A DNA stretch of 64,000 bases, taken from positions 6,966-70,965 of the forward strand of contig NIVC01002915.1 of the NCBI GenBank assembly GCA_002269645.1, given 5' to 3'. Both the position numbers and the translations under genes were made by a program. This document shows, piece after piece, positions 17,473 through 63,144 of the stretch (positions are counted from its first letter, which is position 1; every line of letters starts with the position of its first letter). The notes beneath the pieces were generated by a model, which saw only the letters and a list, made by a program, of their open reading frames with translations, was not told the DNA's origin and did no database searches. Origin of the DNA: Macrostomum lignano. Lineage: Eukaryota.

Positions 17473-17745
17473 CCGACAGCGCAGTCTCCACTCCAGTCGT
17501 GTTGTCAGCTGTGTACAACACCGACTTGGGTACAACTGCTCAACGGGACACCTACAGTGGTAACGGAGTCTATGAGCACCTGGCCCTGCTCAGTATGGAC
17601 TCTGAGTACACCAGCGGTGTGCCAGCGGTGCTTGACTGTCAGCAGCCCGACGGTCGTTGCAGTCGAAGCATCTGCGCAGATCCCAGCATGAAGGAGTCTG
17701 GCACCGCTAATGAGCTGGTTTTCAACTATGTCAACATTAGCGTCG
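17473..17745 (+). CDS. Host exon 1 in window ([16 protein letters not shown]...NYVNISV), domain unassigned
   Basis: ttttttgcAG acceptor, GTAAG donor, phase 1-1, open frame. Confidence 0.75.

Positions 17746-63144: not shown

Follow-up and report, generated by a model that had tools for sequence, protein, structure and literature searches.

A very large Macrostomum lignano gene, probably of extracellular type, with two diverged copies of a multi-module cassette

The window analysed here is a 64,000-nucleotide (nt) stretch of the flatworm Macrostomum lignano (NCBI GenBank assembly GCA_002269645.1, contig NIVC01002915.1, positions 6,966 to 70,965 of the forward strand), and its plus strand from 17473 to 63144 raises the question of whether a long series of short exons, separated by repeat-filled introns, encodes one giant protein, how such a protein would have been built, and what it may bind. 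An earlier note, made from the letters of the window, had proposed a mosaic extracellular lectin-like protein of over 3000 amino acids (aa) built by duplication of a whole cassette of modules. From the present analysis, 17473-63144 is probably most of one very large M. lignano gene for an extracellular-type mosaic whose cassettes were duplicated en bloc, with both ends of the gene missing. In this layout a module in the first exon would be followed by cassette 1 with eight units, a linker formed by exons X19-X20, cassette 2 with the same eight units in the same order, and a tail; exons are numbered X1 to X44 and are mapped, together with the other features of the window, in Table 1.

Exon chain and cassette duplication

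The exon chain was assembled by dynamic programming on codon log-odds, for which 4.6 kb of evident open segments served as the training set, together with generic donor and acceptor matrices; the procedure respects intron phase and split-codon stops, tandem repeats and the long interspersed element (LINE) described below were masked, and manual refinement of the chain drew on splice sites, on the paralogous cassette, and on UniProt models. The best chain on the plus strand runs from 17473 to 63144, so that the single long chain first read from the letters is recovered independently with identical limits; its score is 844, with 8,590 coding nt, whereas the minus strand reaches 173 and five local shuffles reach 3-18. 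After refinement the 44 exons total 8,788 nt and form an open frame of 2,928 codons, free of stops; all introns are GT-AG with the donor consensus GT[GA]AG, a C is present at acceptor position -3 in 41 of 44, and the guanine-cytosine (GC) content is 0.70 at third codon positions (GC3) and 0.47 at second positions (GC2), with an intron GC of 0.48. The window thus holds 2,928 codons and not the more than 3,000 residues that had been claimed; since the chain opens in phase at the acceptor of X1 and closes at the donor of X44, the full gene is longer than 2,928 codons, and with both ends open its total length probably exceeds 3,000. The sequence upstream of X1 (1-17480) yielded no plausible exon.

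Sixteen of the 44 exons are of phase 1-1, which is the exon class typical of shuffled extracellular modules; the 2,928 residues include 62 cysteines and 43 N-x-S/T sequons, and none of their hydrophobic stretches is long enough for a membrane span. Together these features fit a predicted extracellular protein. Pfam analysis of the unspliced open segments of 17.4-45.5 kb returned a microsatellite artefact and nothing else, a blank that is explained by the splitting of the domains over exons of 25-120 codons.

The locus is already partly present in UniProt as uncharacterised M. lignano fragments, which provide gene models made independently of the chain. A search with the profile of a single repeated unit led to A0A1I8GI54 ('F5/8 type C domain-containing protein', 149 aa), which is 96-100% identical to X26-X28; its 90% cluster also contains A0A1I8F8D3 ('TGc domain-containing protein', 1,118 aa; the 'TGc' label is not reproduced by Pfam), which in tblastn against the window is 96-100% identical over sixteen exons, X14-X30. 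At this level of identity the two entries would stem from this gene itself or from an allelic or homeologous copy of it. A0A1I8F8D3 reproduces eight modelled junctions exactly (after X19, X20, X23, X24, X26, X27, X28, and X29), and the X18/X19 junction is matched only in part; since the entry spans X14 of cassette 1 to X30 of cassette 2, an independent gene model bridges the two cassettes across the 7.2-kb LINE-bearing intron. The junctions of the second-cassette discoidin unit D2 are confirmed by both entries, and an intron of the X7/X8 type is missing in cassette 2. Both entries are fragments of automatic gene models that cover only ~38% of the chain, and the cassette duplication is not visible in them.

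The 3' part of the chain has a paralogue elsewhere in M. lignano. A HMMER search with exon X44 among 1.84e9 protein representatives found only three proteins, the best of which is the M. lignano paralogue A0A1I8J9Z6 (6.8e-28; 732 aa); it and its cluster mate A0A1I8JE14 (791 aa) are both annotated as 'C-type lectin domain-containing protein'. Like the 3' part of the window, the paralogue displays C-type lectin, F-type-lectin-like, small exons, and LamG/pentraxin-like in this order, with an identity to the window of 64-68% in the lectin domain (C2) and ~36-40% in X44. It is a different gene, which has no counterpart of X41 and continues with a kringle-like stretch (seen by eye; Pfam negative) and an F5/8C domain (Pfam 30.6 bits), a region that corresponds to sequence beyond the window end here. 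The paralogue models are unbroken across the equivalents of X38/X39/X40 and X43/X44 and supported the long form of X39; homology of A0A1I8JE14 to the small tail exons X42/X43 amounts to 57% identity over 30 residues.

The same body of evidence bears on whether the chain represents two or more tandem paralogous genes, one per cassette and a further tail gene, that were merged by gene prediction and by the chainer. Each cassette is a complete repeat ending in a C-type lectin domain, the cassettes are separated by the 7.2-kb intron that holds the LINE, and the UniProt entries are fragments only, of 149 aa and of 1,118 aa beginning mid-cassette; moreover, M. lignano uses spliced-leader trans-splicing, and a downstream gene could start at an acceptor site. 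However, in A0A1I8F8D3 the C-type lectin domain of cassette 1 continues into X19, X20, and X21 and onward to the kringle, with X19/X20 and X20/X21 among the junctions that this entry reproduces exactly; phases are compatible across the cassette boundary, no stop codon follows X18, and no methionine with a hydrophobic leader occurs in X19-X21. Separate genes are considered unlikely on these grounds, and a single gene is retained as the probable arrangement.

Within this probable single gene, both cassettes carry their units in the same order, as had been read from the letters: mini-kringle, F-type-like, M, F5/8C, F-type-like, F5/8C, unassigned unit, and C-type lectin. Global alignment of cassette 1 (X1-X18) with cassette 2 (X19-X39) scores 400 against 11±6.6 for shuffles; the 1,112 columns are 25.6% identical, and no fewer than 13 exon ends coincide to within one column; the nine exon-length pairs listed in the earlier note were all recovered with matching phases. 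When units are compared one against another, positional partners are clearly related (z of 9.2 for K1/K2, 23.3 for F1/F2, 11.8 for M1/M2, 13.7 for D1/D2, 10.2 for F3/F4, 12.0 for D3/D4, and 9.4 for C1/C2) and are mutual best matches in seven of nine units, whereas same-fold units at different positions mostly give values close to zero, with the exception of D1-D4 at z of about 7-11. X1 has no detectable similarity to X19 (z=0), and the similarity of D5 to D6 is not significant (z=0.7), though their exon lengths (197/203) and phases agree. Best matches between positional partners, with non-positional pairs near zero, are the pattern predicted by one en bloc duplication and not by repeated accretion of single domains. 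The comparison shows that the cassettes arose long ago by one en bloc tandem duplication of ~17 exons and 1,100 codons; the ancient whole-cassette duplication first proposed is borne out by the positional partners at z = 9-23 and by the introns and phases that were kept.

Following one tandem duplication of the ~17-exon block, the copies have diverged to ~26% identity with exon lengths, intron positions, and phases kept. Exon splits differ at three places: X26 corresponds to X7 and X8 (420 vs 334+80 nt), X14 to X33 and X34 (368 vs 186+194 nt), and X17 to X37 and X38 (302 vs 136+217 nt); cassette 1 contains nothing that corresponds to X20 or to the kringle exon X30. These cassette differences suggest that three introns were later gained or lost and that a complete kringle exon of phase 1-1 was later inserted in the middle of an F-type unit in cassette 2; as X30 is a phase 1-1 exon located at the intron that splits the F-type unit F4, a complete kringle is predicted to be nested inside that fold. 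During refinement the start of X26 was changed from 47084 to 47036, a change that recovers 16 residues alignable to cassette 1 and brings the intron positions of the two copies into agreement.

The locus, or one of its cassettes, could alternatively be a decaying, non-functional copy under relaxed constraint. Most Pfam scores are under the cutoff, binding motifs have been lost, and introns are swollen by satellites and transposable elements, with tandem repeats making up 17.2 kb of the 45.7-kb locus. Decay is nevertheless very improbable, as all 44 exons are stop-free with canonical splice sites, exon lengths and phases are kept despite 74% divergence, the third-position GC signal is strong, core fold residues are kept well enough for profile matches at 1e-23, and a paralogue with the same features exists.

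Module identities and the sugar-binding question

In the spliced product only the Kringle match of X30 and the Lectin_C match of C2 are above the Pfam cutoff as single copies, and the remaining identities come from profiles of grouped units. The profile of the four F5/8C units matches the C domains of factors V/VIII (C1-C2) at 1.1e-23, the b domains of neuropilin (b1-b2) at ~6e-15, lactadherin at 4e-13, and also CASPR2, the range across these proteins being 1e-23 to 1e-12. Unlike in these proteins, the single copies score 17.2, 12.5, 19.6, and 22.9 bits, none of which reaches the Pfam gathering threshold of 28.2 bits, and the surrounding architecture is unrelated; the four copies are divergent F5/8C domains. 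Against the Lectin_C cutoff of 22.6 bits, C2 lies above at 35.3 bits and C1 just below at 22.1 bits. X30 scores 36.1 bits against the Kringle cutoff of 34.3 and contains eight cysteines, six of them at canonical kringle positions by eye. The two mini-kringles K1 and K2 have no Pfam match; the profile of the pair matches only kringle proteins among PDB sequences (HGF 1.8e-5, prothrombin 9.5e-4) through positions 5-57 of 77, and the pair is best described as putative truncated or degenerate kringles.

The profile of the five F-type units matches FBP32 at 1.4e-7, a pneumococcal fucolectin-related protein at 3.9e-4, and Sm-hPAF at 0.005. The F-type-lectin-like and LamG/pentraxin-like modules that the earlier note had placed after the cassettes correspond to F5 and X44, respectively; the region of A0A1I8JE14 aligned to X40, the first exon of F5, matches PF22633 at 5.7e-5. 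X44 matches a Saccoglossus protein at 5.4e-6 (HMMER) that carries nine Pentaxin/Laminin_G_3 matches; its direct Pfam match to Laminin_G_3 is 0.069, at 13.7 bits against a cutoff of 27.6. An AlphaFold model of X44 was too poor to use (predicted local distance difference test (pLDDT) score of 46), and the best Foldseek match had E=0.04 with low template modelling (TM) scores, none being significant.

Two of the labels first given to the units are not supported. The M units, which had been called 'FAMeT-like', have no Pfam family at E<=1, Methyltransf_FA included, and no match among PDB sequences; an AlphaFold model of the main exon X26 alone had a pLDDT of 38 and was unusable. Assignment of M as another discoidin or F-type unit was rejected at an hhalign probability of 0.1 for both, and M is a real duplicated unit of ~165 residues that fits no assignable family. 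For D5/D6, which had been called 'degenerate discoidin', similarity to the discoidin profile is limited to a 20-column hhalign match (E=0.067) at the 'LQVDL..ItG' position; neither unit has a Pfam match, D6 has no match among PDB sequences, and, as given above, the two units are not demonstrably alike. X1 and X19-X20 have no match in Pfam or among PDB sequences. That M, and perhaps X1 and X19, are undescribed extracellular domain families, in a gene belonging to a Macrostomum-specific family of giant proteins with repurposed lectin folds, is a tentative and rather unlikely proposal; temporary adhesion, mucus, and gamete or self recognition would be example roles under it.

Whether the lectin folds still bind sugar is a separate question, as the earlier note had proposed a multivalent glycan-binding receptor. 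Among C-type lectin-like and discoidin domains there are many whose ligand is a protein or a lipid and not a sugar. The chain contains five units of the F-type fold, four clear discoidin units, two C-type-like units, and one pentraxin/LamG-like unit, folds that often bind glycans, and these could make a true multivalent lectin in which F-type, C-type, and discoidin modules each bind carbohydrate in mucus, in adhesion, or as a pattern-recognition receptor. A stretch resembling the calcium-binding motif, xNDGx, is kept in three F-type units (VNDGN in F3, GNDGS in F4, and ANDGD in F5) and is absent from F1 and F2. The F-type family is defined by its fold, the fucose motif H-X24-R-X-D-X4-(R/K), and the calcium motif h2DGx, and F-type domains that deviate from the motif may have altered specificity or have lost sugar binding (PMC5712786). 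Here the fucose motif is absent from all five F-type units, the closest remnant being R-S-D-x5-K in F5, and both C-type units lack the EPN/QPD and WND pair; C1 has 'QPG' and no WND, and C2 has 'WNN' and no EPN/QPD. As the classical fucose and calcium/sugar sites are not conserved, the protein need not recognise classical sugars; proteins, lipids, or other glycans may be its ligands. A true multivalent lectin is thus possible and at present doubtful, and the glycan-binding receptor is best regarded as a guess; the module types suggest a multivalent protein, secreted or bound to a surface, that would serve for binding or as a scaffold in a matrix, mucus, adhesive, or recognition system.

These missing sugar-binding motifs also count against the overall reading of the locus as an extracellular mosaic gene, and further observations do so with them. 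The window contains no start codon, signal peptide, or stop codon, and secretion and topology are presumed solely from the kinds of domain present; single copies mostly fall short of the curated Pfam cutoffs, and three unit types (M; D5/D6; X1 with X19) have no recognisable family. The links through X1-X13 and X30-X38 draw only on frame continuity, phase compatibility, and cassette colinearity. A0A1I8F8D3 also differs from the window model by apparent frameshifts or splice choices in X16-X17, at the X25/X26 junction, and in X19; these differences are probably indel errors of an older assembly or reflect a diverged second copy.

Comparison with known mosaic proteins

No named or characterised gene with this architecture was found among the protein matches or in the literature searched, in agreement with the earlier note, which had not recognised it from a named gene. 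The closest comparisons are to F-type lectins and mosaics such as eel agglutinin, striped bass FBP32, Xenopus PXN1, and oyster bindin, with which the window protein shares the jelly-roll fold in several copies per chain; as in Xenopus PXN1, in which an F-type domain is fused to a pentraxin (PMC5712786), an F-type unit and a pentraxin/LamG-like domain are found in one chain. Unlike in F-type lectins, the fucose motif is missing throughout and the calcium motif is partly kept; unlike the F-type mosaics, the window protein is far larger and its F-type units are mixed with discoidin, kringle, and C-type lectin modules.

Among flatworm proteins, Tmed-krg1 of Theama mediterranea is a kringle protein of anchor cells, with homologues reported in M. 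lignano, that is proposed to bind lysine-rich adhesive proteins; it has six consecutive kringles, with predicted intracellular regions flanking the extracellular part, and no discoidin or fucolectin is mentioned (PMC9229212). By comparison of descriptions only, the window gene differs from it in having one full and two truncated kringles scattered among lectin folds.

Internal tandem duplication and exon shuffling are textbook mechanisms and are ordinary for such proteins. The locus provides an example of how a giant extracellular protein would be constructed, with ~17 exons copied by one unequal-crossover event and phase 1-1 shuffling nesting a kringle, and of exon lengths and phases being preserved as sequence identity fell to 26%. 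For M. lignano, a model for regeneration and bioadhesion, it offers a gene model that corrects the database fragments and is far longer than they are, and points to a small paralogous family of lectin-fold proteins.

Feature map, introns, and mobile elements

Table 1. Modules, single exons, paired exons, and large intronic elements of the window (positions are those of the window; exon pairs are given as cassette 1 / cassette 2)
Feature	Exons and positions	Strand	Location or remark
X1	17473-17745 (273 nt, phase 1-1)	+	Cysteine-containing module; first exon found, no start codon or signal peptide; no Pfam/PDB match
Mini-kringle K1	X2 19230-19370 (141 nt), X3 19454-19534 (81 nt)	+	Cassette 1
30-bp minisatellite TGTTACTCCTTCCTGTGTCCTGTAGCCGAT	19562-28836	.	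~309 copies, 93% matches; fills intron 3 (9,394 nt)
F-type-lectin-like F1	X4 28929-29156 (228 nt), X5 29351-29590 (240 nt)	+	Cassette 1
M unit M1	X6 30039-30211, X7 30838-31171	+	Cassette 1; 'FAMeT-like' in the earlier note
F5/8C discoidin D1	X8 31425-31504, X9 31605-31754, X10 31984-32125 (142 nt)	+	Cassette 1; Pfam F5_F8_type_C 0.0056
F-type-lectin-like F3	X11 32568-32804 (237 nt), X12 33097-33230 (134 nt), X13 33317-33404 (88 nt)	+	Cassette 1; PF22633 0.0097
F5/8C discoidin D3	X14 34586-34953 (368 nt), X15 35060-35210 (151 nt)	+	Cassette 1; A0A1I8F8D3 match starts here
Unit D5	X16 35313-35509 (197 nt), first 129 nt of X17 (36279-36407)	+	Cassette 1; 'degenerate discoidin' in the earlier note
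C-type lectin-like C1	Rest of X17 (36408-36580), X18 36912-37132 (221 nt)	+	Cassette 1; Pfam Lectin_C 2.7e-4
X19	37439-37717 (279 nt, phase 1-1)	+	Cysteine-containing module between cassettes; no PDB match
Non-LTR (non-long-terminal-repeat) retrotransposon	37836-43583	-	Apparently intact; in the 7.2-kb inter-cassette intron; GC 58% vs 45-50% around it
X20	44945-45067 (123 nt, phase 1-1)	+	No cassette 1 counterpart; in A0A1I8F8D3 at 97.6% identity
Mini-kringle K2	X21 45371-45508 (138 nt), X22 45594-45668 (75 nt)	+	Cassette 2
F-type-lectin-like F2	X23 45908-46135 (228 nt), X24 46239-46475 (237 nt)	+	Cassette 2
M unit M2	X25 46739-46905, first 330 nt of X26 (47036-47365)	+	Cassette 2; covered by A0A1I8GI54 and A0A1I8F8D3
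F5/8C discoidin D2	Rest of X26 (47366-47455), X27 47687-47845, X28 47926-48067 (142 nt)	+	Cassette 2; Pfam 0.0011
F-type-lectin-like F4, N-terminal half	X29 48669-48908 (240 nt)	+	Cassette 2
Complete kringle, mid-F4	X30 49424-49717 (294 nt, phase 1-1)	+	Pfam Kringle 8.4e-9; X29/X30 junction in A0A1I8F8D3
F4, C-terminal half	X31 53179-53312 (134 nt), X32 53399-53489 (91 nt)	+	Cassette 2
F5/8C discoidin D4	X33 53916-54101, X34 54490-54683, X35 55094-55238 (145 nt)	+	Cassette 2; Pfam 9.8e-5
Unit D6	X36 56110-56312 (203 nt), X37 56575-56710	+	Cassette 2; X37 has a low coding score and is the least certain exon
C-type lectin-like C2	X38 57116-57332, X39 57794-58085	+	Cassette 2; Pfam Lectin_C 2.1e-8
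F-type-lectin-like F5	X40 58775-58964, X41 59404-59628	+	Tail; X41 has no counterpart in the paralogue models
X42	60682-60770	+	Tail exon; boundaries uncertain; no assignable family
X43	61505-61598	+	Tail exon, revealed by the paralogue models; no assignable family
Pentraxin/LamG-like (concanavalin-A-like)	X44 62595-63144 (550 nt)	+	Ends at a phase 2 donor; gene runs past the window
Exon pair 141/138	19230-19370 / 45371-45508	+	Same phases
Exon pair 228/228	28929-29156 / 45908-46135	+	Same phases
Exon pair 240/237	29351-29590 / 46239-46475	+	Same phases
Exon pair 142/142	31984-32125 / 47926-48067	+	Same phases
Exon pair 237/240	32568-32804 / 48669-48908	+	Same phases
Exon pair 134/134	33097-33230 / 53179-53312	+	Same phases
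Exon pair 88/91	33317-33404 / 53399-53489	+	Same phases
Exon pair 151/145	35060-35210 / 55094-55238	+	Same phases
Exon pair 197/203	35313-35509 / 56110-56312	+	Same phases

The window is very rich in micro- and minisatellites, with 53 arrays scoring at least 100, and micro-/minisatellites, the LINE, and a dispersed element resembling a short interspersed element (SINE) would have expanded the introns after the duplication. Sharp shifts in composition coincide with the 30-bp minisatellite and with a GC-rich block at 38-44 kb; the 30-bp array is strand-asymmetric, with an AT skew of about -0.59. The retrotransposon between the cassettes has a second open reading frame (ORF2; 38413-41676) of 1,088 codons with no stop, in which Pfam finds RVT_1 (1.2e-31), Exo_endo_phos_2 (9.6e-20), and RNase_H (2.9e-14), and a possible ORF1 at 41652-42794. 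One 20-bp satellite family is present on both sides of it (37766-37835 and 43584-44781), and the retrotransposon therefore seems to have landed in a satellite array already present in the intron.

A dispersed element of 270-300 nt is present in two copies that are 87% identical (33623-33924 and 54124-54396); its head is tRNA-like by eye, and ARAGORN calls no tRNA there. No tRNA genes or Rfam matches were found in the window as a whole. Most of the 388-nt intron X33/X34 consists of the second copy, at a place where X14 of cassette 1 is unsplit; this intron could have been gained by the SINE-like insertion, or the insertion could have entered an older intron that was later lost from cassette 1.

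Some open segments within introns were considered as coding and rejected. The 11-bp repeat at 35688-36172 and the 14-bp repeat at 58102-58741 are open in all three plus frames for 150-400 codons and would encode Pro/Thr/His-rich repeats of the kind expected of mucin-like linkers; both arrays are out of frame with their flanking exons. The 14-bp array was rejected because its 689-nt intron, if read through, would put X40 out of frame and because the paralogue joins the flanking exons directly. A candidate exon at 51437-51625 was dropped because its donor is weak (score -2.8), two minus-strand ORFs run opposite to it, and cassette 1 offers no counterpart. These two adjacent minus-strand ORFs, of 120 and 132 codons, occupy 51352-52122 in the 3.5-kb intron 3' of the kringle exon and have no Pfam match.

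The 17 kb upstream of the chain (1-17400) are almost entirely satellite, with 23-bp arrays at 1-2432 and 3632-4859, a 354-bp repeat at 12002-13063, G-rich arrays of 26-31 bp at 14.5-17.3 kb, and a telomere-like run of TTAGGG variants at 5293-5353. Near the other end of the window, the intron before X44 contains an inverted repeat of 100 nt with arms that are 98% complementary (61667-61766 and 62075-62174, 308 nt apart); it adjoins a 105-bp tandem repeat (61914-62146) and may be a foldback or an element like a miniature inverted-repeat transposable element (MITE).

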